Shown here: piece after piece, positions 24,565 to 64,000 of the stretch
Layout of the letters: each line of letters opens with the position of its first letter
Position numbering within the stretch: position 1 is the first letter of the stretch
IMG/VR virus record: IMGVR_UViG_3300024262_006558
Span: 62,001-126,000 of that record
Reading direction: 5' to 3' (one strand)
Length of the DNA stretch: 64,000 nt
The notes under the pieces: model-generated
The model's input: the letters and a program-made list of their open reading frames with translations, nothing else
What the model was told of the DNA's origin: nothing
Databases searched by the model: none
Translations under genes and position numbers: made by a program

Positions 24565-24624
24565 ATAACAGAAAATAAAAGATAACTCTTCGAGTCGCTT
24601 AACGCTTATCTTTATTTTCGTGTT
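24565..24624 (-). repeat. Terminal hairpin site of array A, inverted copy of 60263..60322
   Basis: The reverse complement matches 60263..60322 at 59/60 nt. Confidence 0.95.
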
Positions 24625-24688
24625 GTATGCCATTAAAACGGTACGCTCGTACCTCGCCATACAACATGGTATATAAAACATACACTCA

Positions 24689-24847
24689 CTACCACTTTTC
24701 TTCTTTAAGAATTATAGGGTCAAAGGCGTAACCTAAATACGCCTTATACAGTTCAGGTCTTATCCAACCCCTATGTTTAGTTTTTAACCAAATTCCTTTT
24801 TTTATACGCCTTATTATGCGTATTTCATTCCATATACTTGTTATCAT
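24689..24847 (-). CDS. 52-aa basic, Trp-rich peptide encoded inside a hairpin loop
   Basis: Hand translation MITSIWNEIRIIRRIKKGIWLKTKHRGWIRPELYKAYLGYAFDPIILKEEKW. Flanked by arms gtatataaaacata / tacgtttcatatac. Confidence 0.6.
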   Translation of the reverse strand: MITSIWNEIRIIRRIKKGIWLKTKHRGWIRPELYKAYLGYAFDPIILKEEKW

Positions 24848-24890
24848 AATCCGTTCGTTTTACGTTTCATATACTTACCGTTGTAACACA

Positions 24891-25181
24891 TTAGCCAACT
24901 CTCGCTAAGTGCTTTCTAAAATCTTCGTTTTCCTTTTCCATAAATTCAGTAGCCTTTTGCATACATTCAATTAGGTTGTGGTTCTTGGTTTCTATTATTT
25001 CAGCAACTCCTTTCCATTGTCTTACTTCAGATGGGCTACCTTTGTCGCTTACATTTATGAAATAACCATCTTCATAGTCATACATAAAACAGATATTTCT
25101 TTCTTTTGCCAACGCTTCAAAACGTGTTACAACATTTTGTATAGTGCATGGCTTAATTTCGTTTTCTTTATTAGTGTTCAT
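24891..25181 (-). CDS. Cassette hypothetical protein (starts in loop, reads through the site)
   Basis: CTIQNVVTR is encoded by the hairpin arm and GTT. Confidence 0.65.
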   Translation of the reverse strand: MNTNKENEIKPCTIQNVVTRFEALAKERNICFMYDYEDGYFINVSDKGSPSEVRQWKGVAEIIETKNHNLIECMQKATEFMEKENEDFRKHLARVG

Positions 25182-25263
25182 CCTTATTTAAGTTTTTGGT
25201 CATTTATTTAATTAGCGGTTTCAAATCGCCACGACACCATACAAGATGCCGTTGTGTGTAATA

Positions 25264-25473
25264 CTAGCAACTACCATATCTGAAACTCCCAAATCCTTCA
25301 CCTTCGTATTCAGAATCAATAAAGAACCCTAATTTATCAAGTTCCTCAATATCATCCTTGCTCACTAATTCAGGGTCAATAGCTACATAAAAGTAGTCGT
25401 GTTCACAATGGCTTGGGTTTCTTGGGTTGCCATATTTTAAAAGTATTTGTAATGCTTTAATTAAATCTTCCAT
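25264..25473 (-). CDS. Cassette hypothetical protein
   Basis: MEDLIKALQILLKYGN...HCEHD. ATG at 25473. Confidence 0.7.
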   Translation of the reverse strand: MEDLIKALQILLKYGNPRNPSHCEHDYFYVAIDPELVSKDDIEELDKLGFFIDSEYEGEGFGSFRYGSC

Positions 25474-25612
25474 CTTTCTATTTAGTTTGTGGCTTAAATT
25501 CCGTACTACACACAACAATGTATATAGTTTATAAGCCTAATTAATATTATTTTTCAATTTGTAAATTTGTGCTATGGCTTACAAAACCATATACTCAACG
25601 TTATGCTTAACA

Positions 25613-25864
25613 CTATTGCATTAATTCTAACATAGCGTCTATACCATGTATTTGTTTAGTTGCTTTGAGTGTATCGTCTTCTTTGCTCTCTATATTTAAA
25701 GAGTAGCTTTTGCCATAACAAACTACTTTATCACTATGTATGTGGCAAAATCCAGCACTTATAGGTTCAAGGTGTTTAAAAGTCGAGTGTTCTATTGTTG
25801 TCGGGAAAATTATAATTTCGTCATATTCTCCTAATCTTACGTATTTCTGTTTTGTATCGTACAT
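25613..25864 (-). CDS. Cassette hypothetical protein
   Basis: KYV...IIIFP..IEHS...PISAGFC....CYGKSYSLNI pattern, typical of small phage proteins. Confidence 0.7.
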   Translation of the reverse strand: MYDTKQKYVRLGEYDEIIIFPTTIEHSTFKHLEPISAGFCHIHSDKVVCYGKSYSLNIESKEDDTLKATKQIHGIDAMLELMQ

Positions 25865-25960
25865 TTTCAATTTTAGTTTAGTGGTTTAACAATCCGTGAT
25901 AAGCATAACACAACCTATAAAGCCAAAAAAAAGGCTTATAGCTTTGTGCATTAGGCACAA

Positions 25961-26185
25961 TTAAGAAACGAACTCATTAAATTCATCTTCCTTAATTTCT
26001 CGTGCTTTACTATTCGTTACACCACCATACTTTTTAGATACCTTTAAAACCGCATCATCTTCATTTAATGCAAATGTGTAAGCACTCGAAGGTGTACAGT
26101 AAGGTCTTGATACCCTATAAAATTTAACTGTGCCTAACATTGTGTATAGCACATTGCTTTCGGTGTTTTTTGATACTGTATTCAT
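25961..26185 (-). CDS. Cassette hypothetical protein (reads through site)
   Basis: VLYTMLGTV is encoded by the arm and GTT. Confidence 0.6.
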   Translation of the reverse strand: MNTVSKNTESNVLYTMLGTVKFYRVSRPYCTPSSAYTFALNEDDAVLKVSKKYGGVTNSKAREIKEDEFNEFVS

Positions 26186-26257
26186 AGTTTTAAGTTTTTT
26201 ATTTTCAATTTAAGTTAGTGAGGCAACGCGCCATACACTCGTTCGTTATAGTGCATA

Positions 26258-26440
26258 TTATTGCTTTACTTCTTTACCACAATCAAAACACTCGTATTCT
26301 GTTTCGCTTATTGGTTTTTGCATACTTGGCTGCACACAATCGCAATAAAACGTACCCTTCGGCACAATAACATTATCTATATTTAATAGCTTGTTTTCTG
26401 CTTCCTTTTTACCTTCGTTGTACATTTGAAAATCATTCAT
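26258..26440 (-). CDS. Cassette Cys-rich small protein (reads through site)
   Basis: LNIDNVIVP crosses the site. Contains CxC...CxxC. Confidence 0.6.
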   Translation of the reverse strand: MNDFQMYNEGKKEAENKLLNIDNVIVPKGTFYCDCVQPSMQKPISETEYECFDCGKEVKQ

Positions 26441-26500
26441 AATTCATATTTTTAAGTTATTAATCGCTACTAAAACATAGACCTTACATTATATTTAATG

Positions 26501-26698
26501 CTACTTATGTAGTTCTAAACAACGGTATCTAAAATTATATTCATCGTACCAAAAACTTCTACAATTCCACATATTTATAGCATCCCCATAAACATTATTA
26601 TCAAACTTTAACCCTCTTTCTTCTGCTTGTTTGCAACTGTCTATCACTTTAAATCTGTGATAAAAGCATACAGTCATAAATCTTAATATTTTTTTCAT
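26501..26698 (-). CDS. Cassette hypothetical protein
   Basis: 65 aa, with NVYGDAIN..NCRS.W. Confidence 0.65.
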   Translation of the reverse strand: MKKILRFMTVCFYHRFKVIDSCKQAEERGLKFDNNVYGDAINMWNCRSFWYDEYNFRYRCLELHK

Positions 26699-26792
26699 TT
26701 TATCTATTTTGTTTTTAGTTAATTAACCGCACTAAAATATAACACGGTATAAAATGGCATTAAAACGCCATCTATACAACCGTTATATGCAA

Positions 26793-51056: not shown

Positions 51057-51058
51057 TT

Positions 51059-51970: not shown

Positions 51971-51971
51971 T

Positions 51972-53162
51972 ATGACACCCACCTGGAAAGATGTAATGAA
52001 ATTTGAATTGCCTGATAACCCTATTATTTTTGATATAGGAGGATTTAATGGAGACTGGACCCAAATAGCGTTAGATGAATATACTGCACCAACGATTTAT
52101 GTGTTTGAGCCTGTAAAGCAGTTTTATGAAAAAATCAAAAAAAGATACGCCGATAAAAAAAATGTTAAAGTATTTCATTTTGGATTATCTGACTCCACAA
52201 CATCTTTGGAAATTTCTGTATCTGGAGACGCCTCTTCTGTATTTAAGACAAATGGCGCCTCAGAAACTATACAGCTTAAAAGCATTGTTGAATTCATGAA
52301 GGAAGAGGGGGTTTACCATGTTGATCTTGCTAAGATCAACATAGAAGGGGAAGAATATAGACTCTTAGAGCACTTGGTAAAACTGCCTGAACTAAACATT
52401 TTTAACAATTTTTTAATACAATTTCATAAGTTTGTAGACAATTACGAAGAGAGAAGAAGGCTAATTCAAAAGGAGTTATCTAAATATTATGACATGCCTT
52501 TTAATTTTGAAATGATCTTTGAAGGATGGTCTAATAAAAAGGTTGAATTGATTAATTGTGTAGGAGATAGTCATGTTAGCAATTTTGCTAACACAGAAAA
52601 ATTGACTGATATGAAAGTGCCGTCTATCAATAATATGTTTAAAACTTATAGAGCTGGCCCGTACACTGCTTTTAATGTAAATCAAAAAAGCGATGTTAAA
52701 AACTATATAGAATCTATTAGCGATAAAGAGTCTTTACTTATTTGTTTTGGGGAAATAGACTGCAGAGCGCAAGTGAAAAAGGTAATGGAAAATACCAACA
52801 GGAAATATAGAGAAGTGATAGACGAAATTATAGATAACTATATAGATATAATTCAAAACTTTAAAGGTGACAATGTATATTTATGCTCAATAACCCCATG
52901 CATAGAGGATAAACCTCACTGGTACTACTATGAATCTCACCAGGAAGCCTTTGACTGCCCTAAAGGGACTAAGGAAGAAAGAAATTCATATAAAGAATAT
53001 TTTAATGAAAAATTAAAAAGTATATCTTCAAAAAAAGGATATAAATTCATTAGCATTTTTGACTATGTCAAAGATAGAAAAGATTTTTACCTAGATGATA
53101 TACATCTATCTCCAAAAAAAGTTAATTACTTAATAAGAAGGGAGGTACTAAAATTAGCATAA
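51972..53162 (+). CDS. FkbM-family methyltransferase fused to SGNH-hydrolase-like domain
   Basis: DIGGFNG, FEP, KINIEGEEY; then GDSH, FGEIDCR, DDIHL. Confidence 0.8.
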   Translation: MTPTWKDVMKFELPDNPIIFDIGGFNGDWTQIALDEYTAPTIYVFEPVKQFYEKIKKRYADKKNVKVFHFGLSDSTTSLEISVSGDASSVFKTNGASETIQLKSIVEFMKEEGVYHVDLAKINIEGEEYRLLEHLVKLPELNIFNNFLIQFHKFVDNYEERRRLIQKELSKYYDMPFNFEMIFEGWSNKKVELINCVGDSHVSNFANTEKLTDMKVPSINNMFKTYRAGPYTAFNVNQKSDVKNYIESISDKESLLICFGEIDCRAQVKKVMENTNRKYREVIDEIIDNYIDIIQNFKGDNVYLCSITPCIEDKPHWYYYESHQEAFDCPKGTKEERNSYKEYFNEKLKSISSKKGYKFISIFDYVKDRKDFYLDDIHLSPKKVNYLIRREVLKLA

Positions 53163-53959
53163 TGAAAGACATAATAGTAAAAAGTAATTGGGGCATGAAA
53201 GTTAATCTACAACATGAAAAACAAATATATCTTTTTGTTGATGATTTATCTGGAGCGAACACTCAAGTTGACGGTGTTAAGATTTTGTATTTATGTGAGC
53301 CAAATGAAATTTCAGGATTAGCTCAAAAAGCTATTTTAGAAAGCAGCAAATTTGATTACGTATTAACCCATGAATCAACAGTGTTAGACAGATGTAAAAA
53401 TGCTGTACTGTTTGAATTTGGAGGTTGTTGGATTCAAGGATATGAGTTCCCAGAAAAAGAGTTCTCAGTTTCAACAATCGTAGGTTTTAAGAAAATGGCT
53501 GAAGGTCATCTATTAAGACATAATTTATGGATTAGACAAGATGCTATAACTACTCCTAAAAAGTTCTTTATTAGCGGTAATGATCCTCACCACTTAAGGA
53601 TGCCAGCATTTGGAGAAAACCCAGTATTGGAAGGGGAAAAAACCCCATTGTTTGATAGCATGTTTCATATTGTTATTGAAAACTGTAAGAAAGACAATTG
53701 GTTTACAGAAAAGTTAATAGACACATTACAAACGAAGACATTACCTATTTACTGGGGATGCCCTAATATAGGTAACTGGTTCAATACTGACGGGATGATA
53801 ATAGTTAATAATGTTGACGATCTTATTGAGCAAGTAAATAAATTAACCCCAGAATTATATCAAGAAAAACTTTCTTTTATTGAAAGAAATTACGAAAAAT
53901 CCAAAGAGTTTATTAACTTAAGTGATAGGGTTGCAGATAAATTAAAAGAGATTTTATAA
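53162..53959 (+). CDS. GT10 (alpha-1,3-fucosyltransferase-like) protein
   Basis: FHIVIEN....WFTEKL.D......PIYWG.PNI. Confidence 0.75.
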   Translation: MKDIIVKSNWGMKVNLQHEKQIYLFVDDLSGANTQVDGVKILYLCEPNEISGLAQKAILESSKFDYVLTHESTVLDRCKNAVLFEFGGCWIQGYEFPEKEFSVSTIVGFKKMAEGHLLRHNLWIRQDAITTPKKFFISGNDPHHLRMPAFGENPVLEGEKTPLFDSMFHIVIENCKKDNWFTEKLIDTLQTKTLPIYWGCPNIGNWFNTDGMIIVNNVDDLIEQVNKLTPELYQEKLSFIERNYEKSKEFINLSDRVADKLKEIL

Positions 53960-54032
53960 TGAGGGTCATAGGAAACTATTTTTTCACCATTCTAGAAAAA
54001 GGGGAAGTTTGAAACTTTAAAATATATTGAAA

Positions 54033-54824
54033 ATGTATAAAAATATTGTCACATCTCAACTTGCTGGAGGCCTTGGCAACTATTTATTTCAAATAGCTGC
54101 AGCATACTCTTATGCTCTAAAGCATGGCAAAAAGCCAGTTTTTAACACTAATTTATCCATAAAAGTTCACAGGGGAATAGAATGTTATTTTGACAACATA
54201 CTTCGATCGATAGAGAAGAAAGATACGGTAGCAACTCAGACCACAATTGGTGAACAAGGATTTCAATTTACAGAATTGCCTTTTGTTGCAAATGGAGTAG
54301 CTTTAACTGGATATTTTCAATCTGAAAAATACTTTAAGGAATACGAAAAAGAGATTAAAGATCTCTTTTCCTGCCCTGATCACATAAAAGAATCTATAAA
54401 CAAAAGATTCCCTAGTATGGATAGTGTGGAATCATGTTCTATACATGTCCGCAGAGGTGACTATGTAAAACTGCAAGATATACACCCAGTTCAGAGCATG
54501 CCTTACTTTATGAAAGCTTTAAATAAGATGCCAAAAGATTGTAGCATATTTGTTTTTTCTGATGATATAGAGTGGTGTAAAAATTCTTTCCCAGATATGG
54601 GGGAAAGAATTCATTTCGTAGAAGGATATTCCGATGTAGAAGATTTGTATTTAATGTCAATGTGTGATCATAACATTATTTCAAATAGCACTTTTTCATG
54701 GTGGGCTGCCTGGTTAAATGATAATCCTAAAAAAATAGTAGTGGCTCCAAAGAAATGGTTTGGGCCAATGAACTCTCATTTAGATACAAAGGATATTTAT
54801 CCAGAAAAATGGGAGAAAATATAA
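54033..54824 (+). CDS. GT11 alpha-1,2-fucosyl/colitosyl-transferase
   Basis: GGLGNYLFQ, GYFQSEKYF, HVRRGDY, FSDDI.WC, NSTFSWW.AWL. Confidence 0.92.
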   Translation: MYKNIVTSQLAGGLGNYLFQIAAAYSYALKHGKKPVFNTNLSIKVHRGIECYFDNILRSIEKKDTVATQTTIGEQGFQFTELPFVANGVALTGYFQSEKYFKEYEKEIKDLFSCPDHIKESINKRFPSMDSVESCSIHVRRGDYVKLQDIHPVQSMPYFMKALNKMPKDCSIFVFSDDIEWCKNSFPDMGERIHFVEGYSDVEDLYLMSMCDHNIISNSTFSWWAAWLNDNPKKIVVAPKKWFGPMNSHLDTKDIYPEKWEKI

Positions 54825-54967
54825 TGATTTAGGTAGTGATATTAATCTGAATCACTTTTGAATTTTGAAGGACCTAAAATGAGGAAAATGTTAAACGATA
54901 AAGGTAGTAAATGATTATCTAGATAATCATTTAATAAATAGAATTAAACGTATTTATAAAAAAGATT

Positions 54968-55348
54968 GTGAAATTTATGAGAAAACTCTTCTACGTAAAT
55001 AATAGTGGATATAAAACGTCTCTTAATCAAACTCTCAGGCAAGCTGAAGAATCTGCCACAATTAATTACATAAGGGAGAAGTGCAGCGTTTTTATAGCTC
55101 AAATGATTGAATTAAATATAGAGTCGACATTTGGCCCAATGGAATTGCATAACTTTAATATAAGGTGTAGCAAATTTTTTAAGACTATTAATGTCCATGA
55201 TTTTGGTGTAGTATATGATGAGTCTATTTGGATGCCTCAAGACATACCAAGAAATATGTTAAGGGTAACAGTTCAATTAAGCAGTTATTTACATGCATAT
55301 GAGATGGACTTCTCTATATCTAATATTAAGAAAAAATACAATTTATGA
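54968..55348 (+). CDS. Hypothetical protein resembling the tail sheath C-terminal domain
   Basis: NQTLRQ...F.VVYDE......IPRNML...VQL parallels sheath GQKTLQR...FNVVMDD......IDRNTL...IQL. Confidence 0.45.
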   Translation: MKFMRKLFYVNNSGYKTSLNQTLRQAEESATINYIREKCSVFIAQMIELNIESTFGPMELHNFNIRCSKFFKTINVHDFGVVYDESIWMPQDIPRNMLRVTVQLSSYLHAYEMDFSISNIKKKYNL

Positions 55349-56277
55349 AAAGTAAAAGACCGACTAATACAATAATAGTAACTGGAGGCTCTGGGTTACT
55401 TGGAAAACATTTACGAGAAATATGGGATAATGATCACGTAATTTATATTTCATCTAAAGACTTTGATCTCACAAACGAGCAATCGGTTAGAACAATGTTT
55501 AAATTTTACCAACCAAAAGTTGTAGTTCATCTAGCGGCTCAAGTTGGAGGTATTATGGATAATTCTAAACATCCAGTTAAATACCTTAACAATAACATAA
55601 AGATGGATGCTAATGTGTTAAAGTGGGCTGAAGATTTCGGAGTCGAAAAAGTAATAGGCATGCTTAGTACATGTATATATCCTGATAATCTAAATGAAGA
55701 TCAATATCCTATGAAAGAGGAAGTGCTTCATGATGGACCTCCAGCTATAACAAATTTCTCATACGGATACGCCAAGCGATGCATGGCAGTTCAAATGGAG
55801 GCGTACAATAAAGAGTTTGGAACCAATTTTCAATGGATTGCTCCATGCAATCTTTATGGGGAGCATGATAATTTTGATCACGAACAAAAAGCTCACTTTA
55901 TTACAGCTTTAATCAAAAAGATTGATACTGCAGTAAAAAATGGAGATGATAATATTCAACTGTTCGGAACTGGGTCTCCATTGCGTCAATTTATGCATGC
56001 TGGAGATTTAGCTAAAATTATCATAGATTGTGTCGAAAATGATTATAATTTAAATATGAATGTTGCAGTCCCTTGGAATTACTCAATTAAGGATATGGCT
56101 GAAATAGCTCTTAAAGCTTGCGGGGCTGAGCATCTAAAGATAGAATTTGACCCATCTAAGCCAGATGGTCAATATAGAAAAGATGCATCAACTGAAAGGT
56201 TTAAAAAAACCTTCCCCGACTTTCAGTTTACCTCACTTGAAGAAGGTATAAAAAAGGTTTATCAAGCATTGCAATAA
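55345..56277 (+). CDS. fcl: GDP-L-fucose synthase / ColC-type epimerase-reductase
   Basis: TGGSGLLG, HLAA.VGGI, STCIYP, YGYAKR, PCNLYG, GTG.PLRQF, KPDG. Confidence 0.9.
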   Translation: MKSKRPTNTIIVTGGSGLLGKHLREIWDNDHVIYISSKDFDLTNEQSVRTMFKFYQPKVVVHLAAQVGGIMDNSKHPVKYLNNNIKMDANVLKWAEDFGVEKVIGMLSTCIYPDNLNEDQYPMKEEVLHDGPPAITNFSYGYAKRCMAVQMEAYNKEFGTNFQWIAPCNLYGEHDNFDHEQKAHFITALIKKIDTAVKNGDDNIQLFGTGSPLRQFMHAGDLAKIIIDCVENDYNLNMNVAVPWNYSIKDMAEIALKACGAEHLKIEFDPSKPDGQYRKDASTERFKKTFPDFQFTSLEEGIKKVYQALQ

Positions 56278-56389
56278 AGTTTAGATATTCATAAAGATGA
56301 TCCTGCTATAGTTTGACAGGTATTGCATTTTAAACTCAAAAATGATACCTTTACCTTTTGACTCTGAATAATAACTTTAATATATCTAT

Positions 56390-56701
56390 ATGAAGCTTAT
56401 AAATCTAAAACAAGTATCTGATCATAAAGTTAACAAATGGCTTGAGGATAATATAGCTGAACTAACCGCATACCAAAAAGAGCGCATTAGAAATGATGAG
56501 ATGGTAAGATGGGCTCCTTTTAAATTCTATGAACGTAGGAAGAAGGTTGACAGTATATGGATTAGGATATCTGCTTTGTTTATACCTTTAGCGTGGACCG
56601 TGCTAGTTATTGGGCTGCCTTTCGACTTTCTCATTACTGGAACTTGGGGATATAATAAGATAGACTGGTTTAGCAACTGGAGCAGCGCTTGTGGGTTTTA
56701 A
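56390..56701 (+). CDS. Hypothetical membrane protein at the head of array B
   Basis: 103 aa with a hydrophobic segment; the stop codon overlaps the first site. Confidence 0.65.
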   Translation: MKLINLKQVSDHKVNKWLEDNIAELTAYQKERIRNDEMVRWAPFKFYERRKKVDSIWIRISALFIPLAWTVLVIGLPFDFLITGTWGYNKIDWFSNWSSACGF

Positions 56702-56738
56702 TGTTAAGTATATGAGTAGGATTTTAAACGATTAAGTA

Positions 56739-56876
56739 ATGAGCAGTAAAAAGCACGATAAATTAAACAACGCAGAAGTTATAAAGGTGTTAGAAGAAAT
56801 AACAACGGAAGAGAAGTTAGCAATGTTTGGAATAACTAAACCAAGTACAGATGATAAAGATAAGCCGAAAAAGTAA
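56739..56876 (+). CDS. 45-aa peptide inside a hairpin loop
   Basis: MSSKKHDKLNNAEVIKVLEEITTEEKLAMFGITKPSTDDKDKPKK, between arms 56708-56729 and 56877-56898. Confidence 0.5.
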   Translation: MSSKKHDKLNNAEVIKVLEEITTEEKLAMFGITKPSTDDKDKPKK

Positions 56877-57051
56877 GTTTAAAATATTACGCATATACCT
56901 TGTTGTGAAGCGTTTTATGGGCGAGATGTTTACTTTTGAGTGCCACCATAAAAAATGCGATGGTAGGTGCTCTTACTTAGGTGATGATAGGCAGACAGGA
57001 GTTTGGATTAGCTTATATGAATGCAATAAGTGCGGAACTGAATGGATGTAA
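56851..57051 (+). CDS. Cassette Cys-rich protein (reads through site)
   Basis: ILRIYLVVKR is encoded by the arm and GTT; C-terminal CxxC. Confidence 0.55.
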   Translation: MIKISRKSKFKILRIYLVVKRFMGEMFTFECHHKKCDGRCSYLGDDRQTGVWISLYECNKCGTEWM

Positions 57052-57073
57052 TGCTTTACAATAATATATATAT

Positions 57074-57382
57074 ATGACATTTGAAGAAATAGAAACAAAC
57101 CCTGATCTTTCAAACAATTCAGAGCAGGAATATGTTAGACTTAAAAAAAGAAACGTAATGATCAGAAAGTCATTCTACCATAGCTACAATAAATCGGTCT
57201 GCGAGTATGATGTAAACGGTCATCCTACCAAATGCGAATGTGGATGCGAGGATTTCGATCAAGATATCATAGAAATGGTCGAAGGTCATATTCATGAATA
57301 TGACCTTACATGCTCAAATGAAGGCTGTAGAAAAATAGTTGGATACTGGTCTTATGGATCTTGGCAGTCTTTAGAATTGTAA
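57074..57382 (+). CDS. Hypothetical Zn-binding protein
   Basis: CECG...C...C...GYWSYG.W. Confidence 0.65.
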   Translation: MTFEEIETNPDLSNNSEQEYVRLKKRNVMIRKSFYHSYNKSVCEYDVNGHPTKCECGCEDFDQDIIEMVEGHIHEYDLTCSNEGCRKIVGYWSYGSWQSLEL

Positions 57383-57395
57383 TAAAACACATATA

Positions 57396-57635
57396 ATGAA
57401 AAAATTTATAGACATAGAATTGCCTAAAAATTTTATGAACGTATCTATTACCGATAACAACGAATTAGTAGCGGATAACAATAGTAGTTCGGAATGGGAT
57501 ACTTTAAAATTCCCATTGCCAAAAAGGGTGTGGGGAGTGTATAGCTATGAAGCTACCGTAGATAATCAAAACGCTAAATCTATTGCTAGACTAGTTGATT
57601 GTCGAGGTTGGATAAGAAGGTTCTTAGAGGTTTAA
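57396..57635 (+). CDS. Hypothetical protein
   Basis: 79-aa ORF. Confidence 0.6.
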   Translation: MKKFIDIELPKNFMNVSITDNNELVADNNSSSEWDTLKFPLPKRVWGVYSYEATVDNQNAKSIARLVDCRGWIRRFLEV

Positions 57636-57645
57636 TTATAGAATT

Positions 57646-57825
57646 ATGGATATAAAAGAAATAAAAAAAGAAGAGGTAAGTGAAATATATGACTTTTTAG
57701 AGGGGCTGCAAGATTACGGACACATTTACCACTACCCGCCCGAAAATCTTGACGAACCTTTCAAAAAGATAATGGAAGGAATTGAAGAGGTGCAGGGATT
57801 GATGAAAGATAGCTTTGGGATGTAA
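57646..57825 (+). CDS. 59-aa hypothetical protein
   Basis: Hand translation MDIKEIKKEEVSEIYDFLEG...KDSFGM. Confidence 0.55.
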   Translation: MDIKEIKKEEVSEIYDFLEGLQDYGHIYHYPPENLDEPFKKIMEGIEEVQGLMKDSFGM

Positions 57826-58183
57826 TCTTATTTACATGCTGTTAATAAAACTAGGGCAACGTTTAACGTTTTCTAGTAGATTATAATATGCACTCTACCA
57901 TGTGCCCGACATCGGCAACATGGTTTTATGTTGAATTAAATAGGGGTGGGATTAAATGAACGTCTGCACTAGTCGAGTTGAAAATATACTTGCAAGTTGG
58001 TACTAAAGCCAACTATCCTAGCCAACGGGCTTTGCGGTTCACCCTATTTAATGTAACGCTTTGTGTATGGTTAGTAAACCCTTGCACAGACTTTCAAAAT
58101 TAGTATAAACCTTGGTGGGTTTATTACCTACAATGTTAAATGTATGCTTTGCTAGAGATTACGGACAGATAACCACTAAAACA

Positions 58184-58489
58184 ATGGACTTAAAAAAGAG
58201 AATAGAAGAAATTACACAAAACGGAACGCTTGAAAGCGGTGAACAAATAACCTATGTAGATACCGATGACCTTTACTTGTTGCTGAATGAAGTAAACTCT
58301 AGTGAAGTCATACATCTTGTTAGCGATTGGAATGATTGGGTATATGGATCACCTACATCAATAATAGATGGGAGTCATATTGAAGTTATGTGGTCTGACA
58401 ACTCAGTCACTAAAGTTTTTTATGAATGGAGAAGTAAATCTATGGCACATAAGTTACCACCAATAAAGTGGAGGTATTCTAATAGCTAA
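58184..58489 (+). CDS. Cassette hypothetical protein (first 45 codons lie within the hairpin)
   Basis: MDLKKRIEE...SSEVIHLVSDW. GTT at 58319; the TAA overlaps the closing TAAC. Confidence 0.65.
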   Translation: MDLKKRIEEITQNGTLESGEQITYVDTDDLYLLLNEVNSSEVIHLVSDWNDWVYGSPTSIIDGSHIEVMWSDNSVTKVFYEWRSKSMAHKLPPIKWRYSNS

Positions 58490-58581
58490 CGGTTTGGCTA
58501 TGTGCTGAACGTAGAGCAACGGAGTTTTGCATATAGCTAGTGTTATATGCTTTTAATTATTAACAACTAAAGATTATAAAA

Positions 58582-58932
58582 ATGAGTGAAACAGTACATT
58601 ACAGAGGGATTGCTACTAAAATTGAGCAACCAAACGACAAGACATTAATTGATGTCGCAAAAAGTATTTTAACAGAACGTAACAAAGAAATAGCCGACTA
58701 TTATGACAATGTAATAGAGTGTTTGTGTGATAGCTATTATAGAGAATTTTTCTACCATTCAAAAACACAGACCCTTTACAAATTAGACAATAATGAATAC
58801 GAGCCTGATGAAGATATAATAAGAGCAGAACCGAAAGAAAACGGGACTATTGAATATGAGTTAAGATATTATAACGGTGGTGCTGGATTTGATGAATGTA
58901 TGGAAGAGGCTTTTGATAAGCTCGATGCTTAA
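58582..58932 (+). CDS. Cassette hypothetical protein
   Basis: MSETVHYRG...YYNGGAGFDE; bounded by gttatatgc/gcatataac. Confidence 0.75.
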   Translation: MSETVHYRGIATKIEQPNDKTLIDVAKSILTERNKEIADYYDNVIECLCDSYYREFFYHSKTQTLYKLDNNEYEPDEDIIRAEPKENGTIEYELRYYNGGAGFDECMEEAFDKLDA

Positions 58933-59036
58933 TTGCATATAACGGCATCCTGTATGATGTCGTGAAACGAAGTGGAATGCATTCATACACCGTGTTGTGT
59001 GTAGTGCGGATTATTAACTGATAACAAAATTAAAAG

Positions 59037-59216
59037 ATGAATGTATTTGATGAATTTTTAATGGAATCTGAAAAGGAACAATTAAAAGACAACCGACTGA
59101 AAGAACAGAAAGATAAAAAAGACTACTCGTATGAACACGATGGTAGAATAGAAACATGTGACGATTGTAGAACACCTATAAACTCACACGGACACTGCCC
59201 TAGATGCGATTACTAG
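59037..59216 (+). CDS. 59-aa cassette protein with CxxC...CxxC zinc finger
   Basis: Hand translation ends TCDDCRTPINSHGHCPRCDY. Confidence 0.65.
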   Translation: MNVFDEFLMESEKEQLKDNRLKEQKDKKDYSYEHDGRIETCDDCRTPINSHGHCPRCDY

Positions 59217-59267
59217 CATTACACACAACGGATGGTAATATGAATAGTGCGGATTAAAAACATAAAA

Positions 59268-59435
59268 ATGGCAAAGACACGAGAACAAAAAAGAATTGAA
59301 AGTGCGGATAAAGTTTGTAGAGAACTTAGATACCAAATAGTTAAATATGGATTGATAGGTGATTGGGACGCATTAAATAAGCACTTTAATTCTTGGATGA
59401 ATAACGCTAAGAAATCTAAATACGACAGACCCTAG
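59268..59435 (+). CDS. 55-aa protein inside a hairpin loop
   Basis: MAKTREQKR..., between arms gtaatatgaatagtgc and gcattatttatattac. Confidence 0.6.
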   Translation: MAKTREQKRIESADKVCRELRYQIVKYGLIGDWDALNKHFNSWMNNAKKSKYDRP

Positions 59436-59514
59436 CATTATTTATATTACGTGTTGTGCGCACGTTTTAATTGCGACACAACGCTAAGTATAACAAACGG
59501 AAAATTTACGACTT

Positions 59515-59673
59515 ATGAGATTTGAATTAATGCAATGGAAATGGTATAGGAAGTGGAAAGGTGGCTCTTATTACCTTATATGGAATTGGCTACCTATGAA
59601 CACTTTTTGGAGCGACAAACTTATTACAAGCTGTGGAGGCAGAGCCATTAAAGAGGAACACTACCCTAAGTAA
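59515..59673 (+). CDS. 52-aa Trp-rich peptide inside a hairpin loop
   Basis: MRFELMQWKWYRKWKGGSYYLIWNWLPMNTFWSDKLITSCGGRAIKEEHYPK. Confidence 0.6.
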   Translation: MRFELMQWKWYRKWKGGSYYLIWNWLPMNTFWSDKLITSCGGRAIKEEHYPK

Positions 59674-59791
59674 ATTTTATGTTTTGTTATACAATGTTGT
59701 ATGGCAAAGCGTACCGTTTTAATGGCATACAACGGTTGAGTATAAACGTAGTGTTTAACTGAACTTAATTTGAAACACAAAACTTAAAATT

Positions 59792-59992
59792 ATGATAAAA
59801 AGATTGATTGAAAAACTGAAAACATTACGTTTATACTTTGTTAGAAAACGTTGTTTTGAGGTGTATTTCACAGATACCAAAAGTGGAAAGGAAGGAAGAA
59901 TTAATTTATGGGTGAAAGATGTCGATGAAGTAGAACCTTACTTTGAAAAACACTTTCCACATTTGGAATTATATGATATAGGAGAATGTTGA
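59792..59992 (+). CDS. Cassette hypothetical protein (reads through site)
   Basis: TLRLYFVRKR is encoded by the arm and the GTT at 59840. Confidence 0.65.
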   Translation: MIKRLIEKLKTLRLYFVRKRCFEVYFTDTKSGKEGRINLWVKDVDEVEPYFEKHFPHLELYDIGEC

Positions 59993-60102
59993 TTACAATG
60001 TTTTCTAACGACCTGTGTAAAATTTCGTGTGAGGCACGAGCAATGAATTTTAAACCTTGTTAGCGTTTCGTTTTTGAGCGTTGGCATTTAAAAACTAAAA
60101 AG

Positions 60103-60264
60103 ATGAAAGTAAGTATTCAGTTCACAAAAGAAGAATTAAGATTATTAAAAAAGGCGTTATTTTTTGGAATAACACATAATGAAAACAACCAAGAAGCAAA
60201 TAAAATGAATGAATTAGATGCGAAAATGAATTTACTGTGTGCGTTGGCAGAAAATGAACGCTAA
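60103..60264 (+). CDS. 53-aa cassette protein
   Basis: MKVSIQFTKEELRLLKKALFFG...; the TAA overlaps the TAAC of the terminal site. Confidence 0.6.
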   Translation: MKVSIQFTKEELRLLKKALFFGITHNENNQEANKMNELDAKMNLLCALAENER

Positions 60265-60322
60265 CACGAAAATAAAGATAAGCGTTAAGCGACTCAAAGA
60301 GTTATCTTTTATTTTCTGTTAT
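60263..60322 (+). repeat. Terminal hairpin site of array B, inverted copy of 24565..24624
   Basis: aacacgaaaataaagataagcgttaagcgactcaaagagttatcttttattttctgttat. Confidence 0.95.
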
Positions 60323-60394
60323 AACGCGCTTTTAGCTACATAATTTTTATTGATTATATTCAAAAATTTGTTTATGTTTTGAATAAAATCATAA

Positions 60395-61594
60395 ATGACG
60401 GAAGTAAAGATACCCTTAGTAAAAGACACTATATCACATGAGGATATGGATGCTCTTGCGGATTGGATTAAAACCTACCCTCGCCTTACGAAAGGCCCAG
60501 AAACAAATGAATTTGAAAAAGAGTGGTCTGAATGGCTAGGTACAAAGTATTCCGTATTTTGTAACTCTGGATCTTCAGCAAACCTTCTTATGCTTTACGC
60601 TCTTATCGTAGCGAAAAGACTTAACAATAAAAAAATAGTGGTACCAGCATTAGCTTGGGCTACGGATCTTGCTCCAGTAATGCAATTGGGTCTTGAGCCA
60701 ATTATATGCGATTGTAATGGTCAAAATCTCGCTGTAGACCTAAATGATTTAGAACGTATTTTCCAGAAAGACAACCCTTCAGCCCTTATGCTGGTATCGG
60801 TTCTTGGTATCCCTCCAAATATGGATGAGATAATTGTTCTTTGTAAAAAGTATGGAGTTATCCTTTTAGAGGATGCTTGTGAATCACTAGGTTCTGAATA
60901 CAAAGGCAATAAACTCGGAACTTTCGGATCCATGTCAACATTCTCACTATATTTCGGACACCATCTTTCAACTATTGAAGGTGGTATGGTATGCACTGAT
61001 GATGAAGAGCTTTATGAAATATTGAAATCTATTCGTTCTCATGGTTGGGACAGAGATGCTTCAGAAGAGTATCGTAAAAAGTGGAGAGATAAATGGGATG
61101 TGGATGATTTTAACGGCCTTTACACTTTCTACCACCCTGGATTCAATTTAAGAGCTACAGATTTACAAGCATTTATAGGTAGAAGGCAAATTAAAAAAGC
61201 TGATGAAGTTTCTAAAATCAGAGCTGCTAATTTTCAGAAATATCAAGAATTGATATCCGATCATTCTGCATGGAAACCTGAACCGCCAGAAGGCGCTTTT
61301 GTTTCCAATTTTTGTTACCCTGTACTGCACGCAAAGAGAAAAGAGATAGTAACAGATCTAATCGCTAATGGCGTTGAAACTAGACCTATGATATGTGGAT
61401 CTATGAGTACTCAACCATTTTATGTGGACAAATACGGCAGAAAAGAATTATACACCGCAAAGCAAATAGATGATTACGGATTCTACGTGCCTAATAATGA
61501 TAAAATGACTGATGAGGACATTCAAACCGTATGCAACATAATCAATAAGCATACTGTAAACCCTGAAGTAGAACCGCAAGAAAACAATCAATAA
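60395..61594 (+). CDS. DegT/DnrJ-fold PLP enzyme, ColD-like GDP-4-keto-6-deoxymannose 3-dehydratase
   Basis: [29 protein letters not shown] (His at the usual Lys position), RSHGW. Confidence 0.8.
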
Positions 61595-61595
61595 A

Positions 61596-63608
61596 ATGAA
61601 AGAAGATAAAAAGAAAGCTCTCATTATAGGTATCACTGGAATGGATGGGTCTCACTTGTCTGAATTACTTTTAGATAAAGGATATGAAGTTCACGGGGTT
61701 ATTAGAAGACATTCTCATATAGGGGGAACTGGACGAATTGATCACATATTCGATGAATTGAAACTTCATTATGGAGACGTTACTGACGCTTTAAATATAT
61801 CTAGGTTAATTTCCGAAATACAACCCGATGAAATTTACAACCTATCAGCTCAGAGCCATGTAAAAGTTTCTTTTGAAGAACCTGGATATACAGCTCAAGT
61901 AGATGCAATTGGAACATTAAACGTAATGGAATCAGCTAGAATCCATTGTCCTAATGCGAAGATTTACCAAGCATCAACCTCTGAGATGTTTGGAGGTTTA
62001 GCTTACAATAGACCTGAAAATGGTTATACTGAAGAATCTCCATTTCACCCGCGATCACCTTATGGTGTCGCTAAGGTGTACGGTTTTTGGATAGTAAAAA
62101 ACTATAGAGAAGCATACAATATGCATGCTTCCAACGGTATATTATTCAATCATGAAGGTGAAAGACGTGGAGTAACTTTTGTTACTAGAAAAGTGACCAG
62201 AGCATTGGCGGCCATTAAGAAGGGTGAGCAAGATGTTTTGACTCTCGGTAACATGGATTCCTTAAGAGACTGGGGATATGCTAAAGAGTATTGTATAAAT
62301 TTAGATGTACCTATTTTGACAACTAGTGGATGGAAATTTTATGATGAAATTTCTGAAGGTGATCAAATAATTAATTTTAATTCTGAAGAAAATCACATAA
62401 CTACAGATACAGTTAAAAGCAAAATAGTAATTAAATCAAATGGTGAAAAAATTAAATTAACAGGCAGAGGAGTTTGTATAAACGTAACTCCAGATCATCG
62501 GATTTACTATCAGAAAAAAAGTAAAAAATCAAAAGGTGGATGGTCAAAATACAAAATTTGTACAGCTAAAGAATTTTATGATTTATTAAAAAATAAAGCG
62601 TACAGAACAAAGTATGACTATAGGCTGCCGCATTTTCAAGATTATGACAAAAAAGAAAATGAAAAATACTCAGATAACGAACTTTATTTAATAGGGGCTT
62701 TATTGGCGGAAGGTTGTCTATCTAATTCAAATCCTGGGAGAGGGTCTATAGTTTCCTTATCTCAATCTTTTATTAAAAATGAAAAAATTCACAAAAAATT
62801 ACAAAAAATAATAGATGATGAAAAACTTGAAGCTAGGTTATGCAATAAAAACAATGGTGTAACTGAATGGGTCTTTACAGCAGATAGTTCTAAAAAAATT
62901 ATTGAATATTTTGATGGATTTGATGTGCATGTGATGCCTAAAGATTTCTATAATTTAAGCAGTAGGCAATGTAAAATTGTATTTGACTCTTTAATGGATT
63001 GCGATGGATGTTGGGGATCATACACATACACTTCTAAACGTAATTTACTAGCATCTGATTTCCAAACTATAGCTCATCTTGCAGGATATAGAACTACGGG
63101 CGTAAAATTTGTAAATAACGTTTACATAACTAGTGTTATAACACGATCCAAAAAACATATGTATATACAAAATGTGGAATCATATAATGATAACAATGAT
63201 AAAGTTTGGTGTGTGAATAGCAATAATGGAACTATCATAACTAGAGATCAAAACTGCATTAATATAGTAGGTAATTGTGAAGGAATGTGGAGAATGTTGC
63301 AACAAGACACTCCTGATGACTATGTACTGGCAACTAACGAAACTCATACAGTAAGACAATTTGTAGAAGAAGCAGTTAGGTATTGCGGATGGGATATCGA
63401 GTGGAGAGGTGAGGGCGTAGATGAAAAAGGTTATGATAAGTCAACTGGTAAACTTCTCATCGAAATTAACCCTAAATATTATAGACCATCTGAAGTTGAT
63501 CTATTGTTAGGGGACGCTACCAAAGCAAAGGAGAAGATGGGTTGGGAACCTAAAACTAAATTTAAAGATCTAGTCAAATTAATGATGGAGCATGATCTGA
63601 AAGCTTAA
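61596..63608 (+). CDS. gmd: GDP-mannose 4,6-dehydratase interrupted by an intein
   Basis: GITG.DGS.L, AQSHV..SF, QASTSE, PRSPYG.AK, LFNHE..RRG.TFVTRK, RDWG.A; resumes after the insert with WRMLQQD.PDDYV. Confidence 0.95.
62292..63275 (+). mobile_element. Intein with LAGLIDADG homing endonuclease (328 aa)
   Basis: Starts [12 protein letters not shown]; block B VTPDH; LIGALLAEG and FDSLMDCDG; ends VWCV...NG....R.....IVGN followed by Cys+1. Confidence 0.92.
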
Positions 63609-63678: not shown

Positions 63679-64000
63679 ATGAAGTTCAAAGAGTTAACTG
63701 AAGAAGATATATCTAAAATCAAAAAGATATACTTTGACAAGGAGATGAAATATGGAAAGAGAATTCAGATCATATCAGATTTTTTTGGAAAAGAAGAGCG
63801 ACAAACAAGAAAATGGCTAGTTAAACTAGGTATTAAAGAAAAAAAGGATGTAGATGAGCCAGAAGACTTTAAAAAAGCGAAAGGTAAACAAACAGATACT
63901 TCCAAAAAGAGATTTATAGTAACTTGGGCACAGAACGCCACCTCTATTCATCACGAATTCTTTCACTTAATAGAACATTACGCAAAAGATATAGATGCTG
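63679..64000 (+). CDS. Hypothetical protein, truncated at window end
   Basis: MKFKELTEED...RFIVTWAQNAT; open to the edge. Confidence 0.65.
   Translation, partial: MKFKELTEEDISKIKKIYFDKEMKYGKRIQIISDFFGKEERQTRKWLVKLGIKEKKDVDEPEDFKKAKGKQTDTSKKRFIVTWAQNATSIHHEFFHLIEHYAKDIDA

Follow-up and report, generated by a model that had tools for sequence, protein, structure and literature searches.

Mobile gene cassettes separated by attC-like hairpins in a giant T4-like marine phage

Rows of tiny co-oriented genes separated by DNA hairpins in a giant T4-like marine phage raise the question of whether these genes belong to an integron-like system that moves them by site-specific recombination. The sequence analysed here, referred to as the window, is a 64-kb stretch that forms part of a 388.6-kb T4-like phage contig. 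From position 58055 to 60320 its + strand could be parsed without gaps into alternating AAC...GTT hairpin modules and GTT-x...x'-AAC cassettes (array B), and a second array was found on the - strand (array A, 26786-24567). The original prediction, that about 10 such hairpins separate the small genes and that the bases after each GTT pair with those before the next AAC rather than with the AAC of the same hairpin, was confirmed. All four of its example pairs (58542/58943, 58994/59229, 59840/60009 and 60059/60265) were present, and we counted about 10 AAC...GTT modules in array B, namely the nine modules listed below and a degenerate one at 59227-59237. Stop codons overlapped or abutted the AAC, for example TAAC at 58487-58490 and 60262-65 and TAG-CATTACACACAAC at 59214-29. 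However, the region 57063-57929 (three small ORFs and a spacer) has no recognisable sites, and several sites carry AAT or TAC/GTA in place of AAC/GTT. The features were as follows.

56700..56904, + strand: first module of array B, a long AAT-G...T-GTT hairpin with 22-nt arms (56708-56729 / 56877-56898, 86% complementary), whose loop holds a whole 45-aa ORF (56739-56876).
56902..57062, + strand: cassette with weakly complementary ends (GTTGTGAAGCG ... TGCTTTACAAT) and a Cys-rich small ORF; a 15-bp long-range helix appeared in the region-wide fold.
57930..58057, + strand: ORF-less 128-nt cassette, possibly a small RNA, with a 16-nt terminal complement GTTGAATTAAATAGGG / CCCTATTTAATGTAAC.
58055..58137, + strand: hairpin module (AAC-G...T-GTT), supported by folding and by a weak covariance-model hit at 58055-58116.
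58132..58321, + strand: long module (AAT-G-TTAAATGTATG ... CATACATCTT-GTT), read from the sequence, holding the start and N-terminal codons of ORF 58112/58184-58489; the GTT at 58319 lies inside the ORF and starts the next complementary pair.
58319..58490, + strand: cassette body with ends GTTAGCGATTGGAAT / ATTCTAATAGCTAAC (complementarity score 8.5); the stop codon TAA overlaps the AAC.
58488..58544, + strand: hairpin module (covariance model E=8e-9) whose 10-bp stem has two G.T pairs on the + strand; RNA fold -18.5 sense against -8.7 antisense; a 97% identical copy elsewhere in the genome (locus L034, 5317-5384) starts exactly at the AAC.
58542..58943, + strand: cassette with a 116-aa ORFan and ends GTTATATGC / GCATATAAC.
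58941..58996, + strand: hairpin module of the widespread GTATGrTGTCG...ATGCAyTCATACA family (covariance model E=6e-14).
58994..59229, + strand: cassette of the widespread family-1 scaffold (GTTGTGTGTAGTGCGGATTA...ATG...TAG-CATTACACACAAC) with a 59-aa Cys-rich ORF; the same flanks surround 91 different proteins in other contigs.
59235..59450, + strand: cassette with variant cores (GTA...TAC), whose 16-nt ends pair with 14 Watson-Crick and 2 G.T pairs (score 11), preceded by a degenerate junction AAC-GGATG (59227-59234).
59453..59482, + strand: ORF-less ("empty") GTT...AAC cassette hairpin (DNA fold z = -2.8).
59480..59698, + strand: long module with arms 59495-59509 / 59670-59684 and outer AAGTATAAC / GTTATACAA, whose loop holds a 52-aa ORF (59515-59673).
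59696..59733, + strand: ORF-less GTT...AAC cassette hairpin GTTGTATGGC...GCCATACAAC (DNA fold z = -3.8); a copy, with a 26-nt identical stretch, sits at the end of array A.
59731..59842, + strand: long module with an 18-bp stem (94% complementary arms), whose loop carries an A/T-rich leader, the ATG and 16 codons of ORF 59792-59992, which reads on into the next cassette; a 95.6-96.4% identical copy in uncultured phage LR756500 is bounded by AAC and GTTAG and is fused there to a different ORF body.
59840..60009, + strand: cassette with ends GTTAGAAAACGTTGT / ACAATGTTTTCTAAC (score 11).
60007..60061, + strand: hairpin module (covariance model E=6e-15), 98.6% identical over 73 nt, together with the following cassette 5' end, in Maribacter phage Panino.
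60059..60265, + strand: cassette with a 53-aa ORF and ends GTTAGCGTT... / ...AACGCTAAC; the same ends surround an unrelated 77-aa ORF in Panino.
60263..60320, + strand: terminal module (AAC-AC-13-bp A/T stem...T-GTT-AT; DNA fold z = -3.0) that closes every array of this genome and is a possible terminator and/or docking site; five copies were found in the source contig and one in another contig, each identity block starting at the AAC.
24567..26786, - strand: array A, with the same architecture on the other strand, comprising seven cassettes (5' G of each at 26743, 26476, 26138, 25909, 25516, 25133 and 24665), modules including 26786-26741, 25602-25514 and 25253-25131, and the terminal module 24624-24567.

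To determine whether the complementarity of cassette ends exceeded background, 17 curated cassettes from arrays A and B were scored. The mean anchored score was 7.0 for a cassette's own ends against 1.5 for all mismatched 5'/3' combinations; 12/17 against 3/272 reached a score of 6, and 0 of 20000 permutations reached the observed sum. In 11 of 11 adjacent cases the own 3' end outscored the AAC of the same hairpin. Folded as single-stranded DNA, 10 of 10 hairpin segments were more stable than the mean of their dinucleotide shuffles, with z from -1.0 to -3.8. A covariance model built from related modules produced hits only inside the two arrays of the window, always on the ORF-sense strand.

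The pairing was also strand asymmetric. All 10 transition mismatches in the cassette stems were G.T on the ORF-sense strand and none were A.C, and modules were more stable on the sense strand in 27/29 cases. One G.U pair was conserved in 20/24 modules, and 5 of 8 stem pairs showed compensatory changes. In 64 family-1 cassettes the covarying pair was G-C in 45, A-T in 15, G.T in 4 and A.C in 0. About 27 of 91 family-1 cassettes, however, have a 3' arm that departs from the canonical pattern; several of these are only single wobble-compatible changes, whereas the rest have an outer 3' arm that does not match their 5' arm.

Next, we considered whether the elements are exchanged between genomes. 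The same scaffold was found in more than 150 viral and metagenomic contigs, carrying 91 distinct cargo proteins in 71 families, including DNA methyltransferases. Two pairs of related phages differed by exactly one unit, consisting of a module plus its downstream cassette and bounded AAC|...AAC|. In the first pair, L068 and L070, the sequences are 100% identical over 609 + 1153 nt and differ by one 949-bp unit carrying an N6/N4 DNA methylase, with junctions ..CCTAAC|AAGG.. and ..CTATAAC|GGTT... In the second, Polaribacter phage P12002S carries one extra unit relative to P12002L, and the two modules at its edges differ in sequence, so homologous recombination between them is unlikely. Single units were 97-100% identical in otherwise unrelated contigs, and the right ends of shared blocks lay within 2 nt of an AAC in 15/19 cases against 29% expected. 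The module plus the cassette 5' end was inherited as one block whose left edge is at the AAC, although some left block ends lay at GTT or inside the module. A strain 99.98% identical showed no rearrangement.

The integron-like interpretation in the original prediction was therefore only partly supported. The units are discrete, exchangeable gene cassettes bounded by structure-defined attC-like sites, their ends pair with each other rather than within one hairpin, the arms covary, the cores mostly deviate from GTTRRRY (2 of 11 sites fit), and related genomes show precise gain or loss of units. In contrast to the predicted crossover at G|TT, breakpoints fell at the AAC| (5') side of the hairpin. 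The hairpin therefore travels with the downstream ORF, the opposite linkage to bacterial integron cassettes, and the strand under selection to fold is the ORF-sense strand. Much of the mosaicism also consists of ORF replacement inside conserved flanks, with block ends at the ATG and at the stop codon, which site-specific exchange alone does not explain. Nor is such a phage system undescribed: clusters of attC sites without an integrase were reported in virulent phages by Qi et al. 2023 (Front Microbiol, PMC9892861), including Polaribacter phage P12002L, whose published attC1 belongs to this module family.

A recombinase, IntI-like or other, was not found in the window or next to about 150 related arrays. 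Within the window this applies to the 49 ORFs scanned with Pfam; ten array ORFs were scanned only against PHROGs, and seven larger ORFs, mostly tail-fibre-like, were left out. No protein family recurred next to the arrays in more than 4 contigs, P12002L has no annotated integrase, and the 185-aa tyrosine-recombinase domain of Panino has no relative in the other loci. The proposed recombinase distinct from IntI therefore stays an inference, and the enzyme may come from the host.

We consider it somewhat more likely than not that the arrays are rows of small mobile gene cassettes that exchange by strand-specific, structure-directed site-specific recombination at attC-like sites. In this view one unit is [G-hairpin module-T-GTT-x-short A/T-rich leader-ORF-stop-x'-AAC]; on the ORF-sense strand the module would fold into a hairpin while GTT-x pairs with the unit's own x'-AAC, and in an excised circle x'-AAC, the module and GTT-x would form one long attC-like stem. 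Units would be cut and joined at or within the conserved AAC (AAC|G, possibly AA|C), so that the hairpin travels with the gene downstream of it and can supply that gene with its leader and sometimes with its start codon, and the terminal module may act as docking site and terminator. The architecture, the pairing, the strand bias, and the precise one-unit gain or loss and transfer at AAC rest directly on the data, whereas a single-stranded DNA intermediate, a circular form and the enzyme are inferred, the last being most likely a tyrosine recombinase acting in trans, of integron-integrase or Xer type and possibly host-encoded.

Published data on P12002L bear on this model in both directions. 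Our covariance model hit the published P12002L_attC1 at E=1e-8, and the terminal-type P12002L_attC2 was recombined by IntI1, whereas the module-type P12002L_attC1 gave no recombinants with IntI1 (PMC9892861). The primer table lists attC2 in the orientation opposite to the ORFs, from which we infer that the strand called bottom and found active in that study would be the ORF-sense strand. Against the model, the hairpins are weak as DNA (-7 to -11 kcal/mol) and rich in G.T, which suits RNA at least as well, and the extra unpaired bases sit on the same arm as the junction AAC, an arrangement apparently unlike that of canonical attC bottom strands.

Among the alternatives, one unlikely but surviving possibility is that the elements are PeSL-like mobile regulatory cassettes, in which the conserved intergenic elements (hairpin plus leader or promoter) are expression signals and genes are shuffled by ordinary phage homologous recombination between these conserved patches, as proposed for T4-type phages (PMC2839356, PMC4122927). 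Consistent with this, the phage is T4-like, conserved blocks run from the module to the ATG, the stop codon sits in the conserved 3' flank, small-scale mosaicism occurs inside the flanks (for example L053 against L062, two of the loci carrying the scaffold), and some block ends lie inside modules. However, both one-unit indels and most single-unit transfers have only (T)AAC in common at their junctions, which is too short for homologous recombination, and the modules flanking the P12002S insertion differ in sequence. Nor does this model predict the cassette-specific x/x' complementarity or the invariant AAC/GTT, and the elements occur in unrelated, non-T4 phages with different terminases.

Equally tentative is single-strand "peel and paste" transposition of the IS200/IS605 / REP-RAYT kind, in which a trans-acting HUH (Y1) nuclease would cut 3' of AAC on one strand, guided by pairing between the cleavage sites and the GTT-x next to the hairpin foot, and units would insert 3' of another AAC. 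This would explain the strand specificity, the absence of target duplication, cuts after AAC at both ends, tandem build-up (each unit ends in a new AAC target) and the pairing of the end with a sequence beside a hairpin. However, the resemblance is by analogy only, no Y1/HUH protein was seen in the window or among the ten most recurrent neighbouring protein families, and units carry one hairpin rather than two subterminal ones.

Somewhat less likely still, the structures may work only in RNA, with hairpins and long-range 5'/3' pairing punctuating a polycistronic transcript for processing, stability or translational insulation of each mini-gene and with the DNA-level mosaicism being incidental. 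The stems are rich in G.U on the sense strand, with one G.U pair conserved, and the sense/antisense gap is large with RNA parameters (-17.1 against -12.4 kcal/mol) and small with DNA parameters. In addition, the stop codon overlaps the 3' arm, the leader follows the 5' arm at a fixed 40-44 nt, and the terminal module looks like a terminator. This reading does not explain the invariant AAC/GTT triplets across sequence families, the exact one-unit indels at AAC or the 97-100% identical units in unrelated genomes, and no Rfam family matched, although an RNA role may well coexist with DNA mobility. Finally, a chance set of palindromes in A/T-rich intergenic DNA, or of ordinary terminators, is refuted by the permutation test, the family-1 covariation and the restriction of covariance-model hits to the arrays, and is countered by conservation in more than 150 contigs, even though GTT...AAC pairs with short complements are common background window-wide and individual DNA-fold z-scores are modest.

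The closest known system is the clusters of attC sites lacking an integrase (CALINs) in virulent phages (PMC9892861), of which P12002L carries the same element family. The published P12002L_attC1 is the gp36-gp35 intergenic module hit by our model, the P12002L methyltransferase genes are flanked by GTT-x...x'-AAC, there is no adjacent integrase, DNA methyltransferases are among the cargo, and one phage site was recombined by IntI1. That study found 17 such clusters in 10,705 genomes with standard attC models and called 2 sites in P12002L; in the sections we consulted it does not report the cassette-specific end pairing, the junctions at AAC, the linkage of the site to the downstream ORF, the sense-strand bias, the conserved leader scaffold or the breadth of distribution observed here. 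The system is seen in many aquatic phage and metagenome contigs, of which only isolated examples had been reported previously.

Bacterial integron cassettes and attC sites (PMC9892861), especially those of sedentary chromosomal integrons with near-identical attC repeats, share RYYYAAC...GTTRRRY-like inverted cores with invariant AAC/GTT, an imperfect hairpin with unequal spacers and a variable loop, co-oriented promoter-poor small ORFs, cassette ends that pair once circularised, strand-specific folding, unrelated ORFs sharing nearly identical sites, and ORF-less cassettes. In the phage elements, however, junctions lie at the AAC (R'') side so that the site goes with the downstream ORF, the sense strand is the stable one, end complementarity is 9-16 nt rather than about 7, GTTRRRY is met at only 2 of 11 sites, loops can hold leaders, start codons or whole ORFs, and no intI, attI or Pc was found. 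The elements are phage-borne and were almost absent from a scan of one genome for each of 185,579 species (4 hits, all on metagenome-assembled contigs).

PeSLs (promoter-early stem-loops) of T4-type phages (PMC2839356, PMC4122927) are likewise composite stem-loop plus expression-signal elements that flank small ORFans in plastic regions of T4-like genomes and are proposed to mediate modular shuffling and mini-circle formation. They are defined by a sigma-70-type promoter and a G/C-rich terminator stem and recombine through homology, whereas the defining features here are AAC/GTT cores, cassette-specific terminal complements and junctions without flanking homology, and the elements also occur in non-T4 phages. 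IS200/IS605-type single-strand transposons and their miniature or REP derivatives share strand-specific hairpins, cleavage next to a short conserved motif, no target duplication, and recognition of ends by pairing with a sequence beside the hairpin. In the phage arrays no HUH transposase was found within the scope given above, there is one hairpin per unit, and the cargo is a variable ORF in a conserved expression scaffold.

The window (contig positions 62001-126000) belongs to a 388,594-bp viral contig, IMGVR_UViG_3300024262_006558, whose Gp23-type capsid protein, gp21-type prohead protease, tail sheath and PhoH mark it as a T4-like jumbo phage. Inspection of the sequence showed what the original prediction had described, namely small co-oriented ORFs of 45-125 aa separated by hairpins of the form AAC-G-spacer-arm-loop-arm-shorter spacer-T-GTT, with the bases after each GTT complementary to those before the next AAC. 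The observation was confirmed. The features of the window that are relevant here are as follows.

56700-60320 (+), array B, lying inside the sugar-nucleotide and glycosyltransferase cluster, between an epimerase (55345-56277) and a DegT aminotransferase (60395-61594).
58055-60320 (+), the part of array B that parses without gaps into alternating modules (AAC...GTT) and cassettes (GTT-x...x'-AAC) that share the triplets.
58132-58321 and 59731-59842 (+), modules that hold a leader, an ATG and N-terminal codons in the loop; other modules are short hairpins.
56700-56904 and 59480-59698 (+), modules that hold a whole small ORF in the loop.
57063-57929, a stretch with no sites.
57930-58057 (+), a 128-nt ORF-less cassette with 16-nt complementary ends and internal hairpins, which could be a small RNA cargo but has no Rfam match; two other cassettes are ORF-less hairpins.
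26786-24567 (-), array A, with the same anatomy on the other strand.
49852-63608, a large sugar-nucleotide and glycosyltransferase cluster (GT2, GT10, GT11, FkbM methyltransferase, epimerase, DegT, Gmd), with array B inserted in its middle.
49230-49874 (+), a free-standing GIY-YIG/NUMOD homing endonuclease at the head of the glycosyltransferase cluster; a relative is fused to a longer protein in contig L079.
61596-63608 (+), a GDP-mannose 4,6-dehydratase (670 aa) that matches its Pfam family in two stretches separated by an insert of about 330 aa, which looks like an intein inside a phage sugar-pathway gene.
18639-19660 and 20642-21678, an internal duplication of about 1 kb at 73% identity between neighbouring large tail-fibre-like genes; further shorter repeats occur among the genes at 700-10100.

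Both arrays end in the same 58-nt terminal module, which occurs five times in the source contig, two of them in this window. A second intergenic repeat family of about 40 nt (AAGTACATA..TCCCC..CGTATATATTGGTGAATC) was observed outside the window, in stretches L033 and L034 of the same genome (e.g., L034 3972-4011 and 6402-6438), upstream of many small ORFs; it looks promoter-like and sometimes has a CCCCATCACC/GGTGATGGGG hairpin.

To determine if the pattern was more than chance, window-wide counts of GTT...AAC pairs were first compared with those of the other trinucleotide pairs, and a tiling or chaining score was calculated, but both were swamped by the A/T-rich background. A generic minimum-free-energy scan of every AAC...GTT interval and a fold of the whole array were likewise uninformative, and Rfam and tRNA scans of the window found nothing. 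The window-wide counts and the tiling or chaining score were replaced with curated sites, a permutation test and a covariance model. For 17 curated cassettes, the anchored complementarity of a cassette's own ends averaged 7.0, against 1.5 for all mismatched pairs; 12 of 17 reached a score of 6, against 3 of 272, and none of 20000 permutations reached the observed total. In 11 of 11 adjacent cases, the own 3' end beat the AAC of the same hairpin. All ten hairpin segments tested as DNA folded better than the mean of their shuffles (z of -1.0 to -3.8). The covariance model, built from related modules in other contigs, hit the window only inside the two arrays and only on the ORF-sense strand, with three strong hits and one weak hit in array B and three hits in array A.

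With respect to the inverted core boxes of integron attC sites (R'' RYYYAAC and R' GTTRRRY), the AAC was invariant and the GTT nearly invariant in 24 aligned modules, while only 2 of 11 array-B sites fit GTTRRRY (GTTGAAT and GTTAAAT) and some sites carried AAT or TAC/GTA. The modules did form an imperfect attC-like hairpin that is favoured on one strand, with an eight-pair consensus stem showing compensatory changes at 5 pairs, a G.U pair in 20 of 24 sequences, and a 5' spacer longer than the 3' spacer. When transition-type mismatches inside the cassette stems were scored symmetrically, all ten were G.T on the ORF-sense strand and none was A.C. The modules were more stable on the sense strand in 27 of 29 cases with RNA parameters (-17.1 against -12.4 kcal/mol) and in 25 of 29 with DNA parameters. 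Selection therefore acts on a single strand, the one that carries the ORFs, in both arrays even though they lie on opposite strands of the genome.

Next, we considered how widely the element is distributed. Short stretches of array B were 96-99% identical to Maribacter phage Panino and to an uncultured 462-kb phage, and both showed the same anatomy. Scanning for the 5' end of one cassette family, family 1 (T-GTTGTRTGTAGTRCGGA), gave 38 stretches in about 33 viral contigs and more than 120 metagenome contigs, the latter number being a lower bound. Across one genome for each of 185,579 bacterial and archaeal species, the same scan gave only four genuine hits, all on contigs of metagenome-assembled genomes, and a search of a phage database with the family-1 module plus flank found no isolate. 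The neighbouring genes include different terminase types, portals, DnaB and single-strand annealing proteins, so the carriers are unrelated phages. Within this one family, 91 distinct proteins in 71 families (25-238 aa, including N6/N4 DNA methylases) sit in the same scaffold. The distance from GTT to the start codon was 40-44 nt in 84 of 91, and the stop codon was TAG in 81 of 91, its G being the first base of the 3' arm. The arms covary, with position 13 pairing as G-C 45 times, A-T 15 times, G.T 4 times and A.C never; these counts are not phylogenetically independent, but the absence of A.C agrees with the strand bias. The cassette ORFs of the window itself had no Pfam family and only two PHROG families of unknown function, and protein-based retrieval with the 116-aa cassette ORF found only the source contig.

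Two natural experiments showed that the units are mobile and where the joints lie. Contigs L068 and L070, from different samples, were 100% identical over 609 and 1153 nt and differed by 949 bp that is exactly one unit, comprising the module, GTTATAGGTAGTGC, the leader, a 261-aa DNA methylase and TAG-TAGCATTACCTATAAC. The junctions read ..CCTAAC↓AAGG.. and ..CTATAAC↓GGTT.. where L070 has ..CCTAAC↓GGTT.. (the arrow marks the joint). The cultured Polaribacter phages P12002L and P12002S were 99% identical up to ..TTGCAGGTAAC↓, after which P12002S carries one extra unit (module a, GTTACCTGG.., a methyltransferase, ..TTGTTGCTAAC↓) before the module (module b) and cassette shared with P12002L. Modules a and b differ in sequence, so recombination between repeats does not explain the difference. 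After the next cassette (..CTTGCATACAAC↓) the two genomes diverge again.

In addition, single units were 97-100% identical in otherwise unrelated contigs (L034/L147, L098/L153, L100/L115, L108/L164 and others). Of 19 internal right ends of such blocks, 15 lay within 2 nt of the C of an AAC, against 29% for random positions. Left ends lay at the AAC in 7 of 20 and otherwise at the GTT, inside the module or further upstream, and one block ended between AA and C/T. The module and the following cassette 5' end are inherited together, and the upstream x' is independent of them. The unit of mobility is therefore the module plus the downstream cassette, joined at or in AAC. The canonical crossover at G↓TT, which the original prediction had proposed, was rejected for the observed indels. 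The same module-encoded 16-residue N-terminus (MIKRLIEKLKTLRLYF) was found at window 59792-59842 and at positions 3064-3114 of locus L002, fused in frame to two unrelated ORF bodies in two phages, and a hairpin module can therefore donate a start codon and a leader peptide.

Not all of the data fit a purely site-specific model. Many homology blocks stop at the ATG (right ends peak 3-6 nt after the A of ATG), and the conserved 3' flank starts at the stop codon; ORFs are therefore also replaced inside constant flanks. For example, window cassette 60059-60265 and a Panino cassette share both ends but hold unrelated ORFs. About 27 of 91 family-1 cassettes have a 3' arm that departs from the canonical pattern; several are only single wobble-compatible changes, and the others have outer 3' arms that do not match their 5' arm. 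A relative of array A in a second sample (L029/L036), 99.98% identical over 20.6 kb, had the same order with no indel, which is too close to be informative about mobility.

To find the enzyme that may be responsible, the window and related loci were searched for recombinases, and none was found. No Phage_integrase-family protein was present among the 49 window ORFs searched with Pfam, a set that leaves out ten array ORFs compared only with PHROGs, seven large ORFs and the roughly 300 kb of the source genome outside the window. Among 382 ORFs of at least 100 aa next to related arrays, no family recurred in more than 4 contigs, and the ten most recurrent families, searched with Pfam, held no recombinase. 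No HUH (Y1) transposase was seen in the window ORFs scanned or in those ten families, a search that did not extend to host genomes. None of the annotated genes of P12002L is a recombinase. Panino encodes a 185-aa protein (PANI_CDS0116; L087 31797-32354, minus strand) that matches the catalytic Phage_integrase (tyrosine recombinase) domain over residues 33-174 and is too short for a full-length integrase; it sits next to an exonuclease, in a phage annotated without lysogeny functions, and has no homologue in about 1 Mb of related loci. The only protein family shared by the three cassette-bearing phages is phrog_1745 (window 63679-64000 and L003 13285-14856; P12002L gp08; Panino CDS0060/61), a T5-A1-like 'DNA transfer protein' with a weak match to a metallo-phosphoesterase PHROG (phrog_221) and 39% identity between the jumbo phage and P12002L. 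It is split into two ORFs in Panino and is not flanked by cassette sites, and it is regarded as a weak lead only.

Phage-borne attC clusters have been reported previously. Qi et al. 2023 (PMC9892861) screened 10,705 phage genomes with IntegronFinder and HattCI and reported 17 clusters of attC sites without an integrase, including one with two methyltransferase genes in P12002L. Their primer table gives P12002L_attC1, called as attC by HattCI, as the gp36-gp35 intergenic module; our model hit this site at E=1e-8, and it has the AAC-GG...T-GTTAGGC form. Their attC2 is the terminal-type element after gp35. In their assay it was recombined into attI1 by IntI1 on its 'bottom' strand only, whereas attC1, of the module type, gave no recombinants. 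Since the primer table lists attC2 in the orientation opposite to the ORFs and the paper notes divergent site directions in this phage, we infer that its active strand is the ORF-sense strand, in line with the strand bias found here. The published sites attC1 and attC2 of a 132-kb Pseudoalteromonas phage, PH101, have the same TATAAC-G...T-GTTATA outline, suggesting that the architecture may extend beyond phages of Bacteroidota. A search for later work found nothing closer, and a literature search with sequence strings gave only chance primer matches.

The best-supported reading, which we consider somewhat more likely than not, is strand-specific, structure-directed site-specific recombination at attC-like sites, in which the joint is at the AAC, the site is carried upstream of its gene, and the enzyme is supplied in trans. 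The architecture, the pairing, the strand bias and the exact gain, loss and transfer of units were shown, while the single-stranded intermediate, the circle and the class of the enzyme are inferred. The integron-like interpretation of the original prediction was partly supported.

Of the alternatives, homologous exchange of the kind described for PeSLs of T4-type phages probably contributes to the ORF swaps, and some blocks do end inside conserved flanks, but it cannot make the AAC-only junctions: the unit junctions share only (T)AAC, and the modules flanking the P12002S insertion differ. HUH-type single-strand transposition has the same geometry but a different enzyme, for which no gene was seen in the ORFs and families scanned. 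An RNA-only role cannot explain the DNA junctions, although the G.U richness and the fixed leader suggest that an RNA function coexists.

It is also possible, though in our view less likely than not, that these elements represent a distinct class of single-strand-structure-directed cassette mobility, specific to phages of aquatic Bacteroidota (and perhaps other marine hosts), that would mirror integrons. In this view, the recombination site would sit upstream of its gene, carry that gene's expression signals, be cut at the AAC side on the sense strand, and be moved by an enzyme that is not a phage-linked IntI (a host Xer/IntI-type or a new enzyme). If so, it would be a major route by which unrelated lytic phages trade anti-defence and orphan genes.

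Lytic phages are known to be mosaic, but the mechanisms that move single accessory genes between unrelated phages are poorly defined. Here, one compact element occurs from a 49-kb Polaribacter phage and a 77-kb Maribacter phage to a 388-kb T4-like phage, and in more than 150 aquatic viral and metagenomic contigs. It packages at least 71 protein families, including anti-restriction methyltransferases, in a standard expression scaffold and is gained and lost at an exact three-base core. If the mechanism is integron-like with reversed polarity, it extends structure-specific recombination beyond bacterial integrons, and it would also give a handle on how cassettes are born, as the attachment of a conserved site to arbitrary ORFs is a long-standing puzzle for chromosomal integrons. 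Practically, the scaffold gives a sequence signature for mining phage accessory and counter-defence genes.

Compared with known systems, the linkage is opposite to that in bacterial integrons, where attC stays with the upstream ORF and the crossover is at G↓TT. The arrays are also not complete integrons, in that no adjacent intI, attI and Pc were found, the intI search covering the ORFs scanned. Compared with PeSLs, which have a conserved sigma-70-like early promoter joined to a terminator stem-loop, a conserved leader of 40-44 nt lies between GTT and ATG and TAAnTTGAAA-like motifs occur in long loops, without establishing a promoter, and the stems are A/T- and G.T-rich rather than G/C-rich. 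The polarity, cassette-end pairing, expression scaffold and exact unit mobility were not described in the published work that we read. The arrays do have the properties of a phage-borne CALIN (cluster of attC sites lacking an integrase), with two or more attC-like sites within a few kb, as defined by our own model and curated sites rather than by the curated attC model, co-oriented cassettes, no integrase found nearby, and homology to a published phage CALIN site. They are not a new kind of system, because phage attC clusters have been published, but a coherent, widespread and mechanistically deviant variant.
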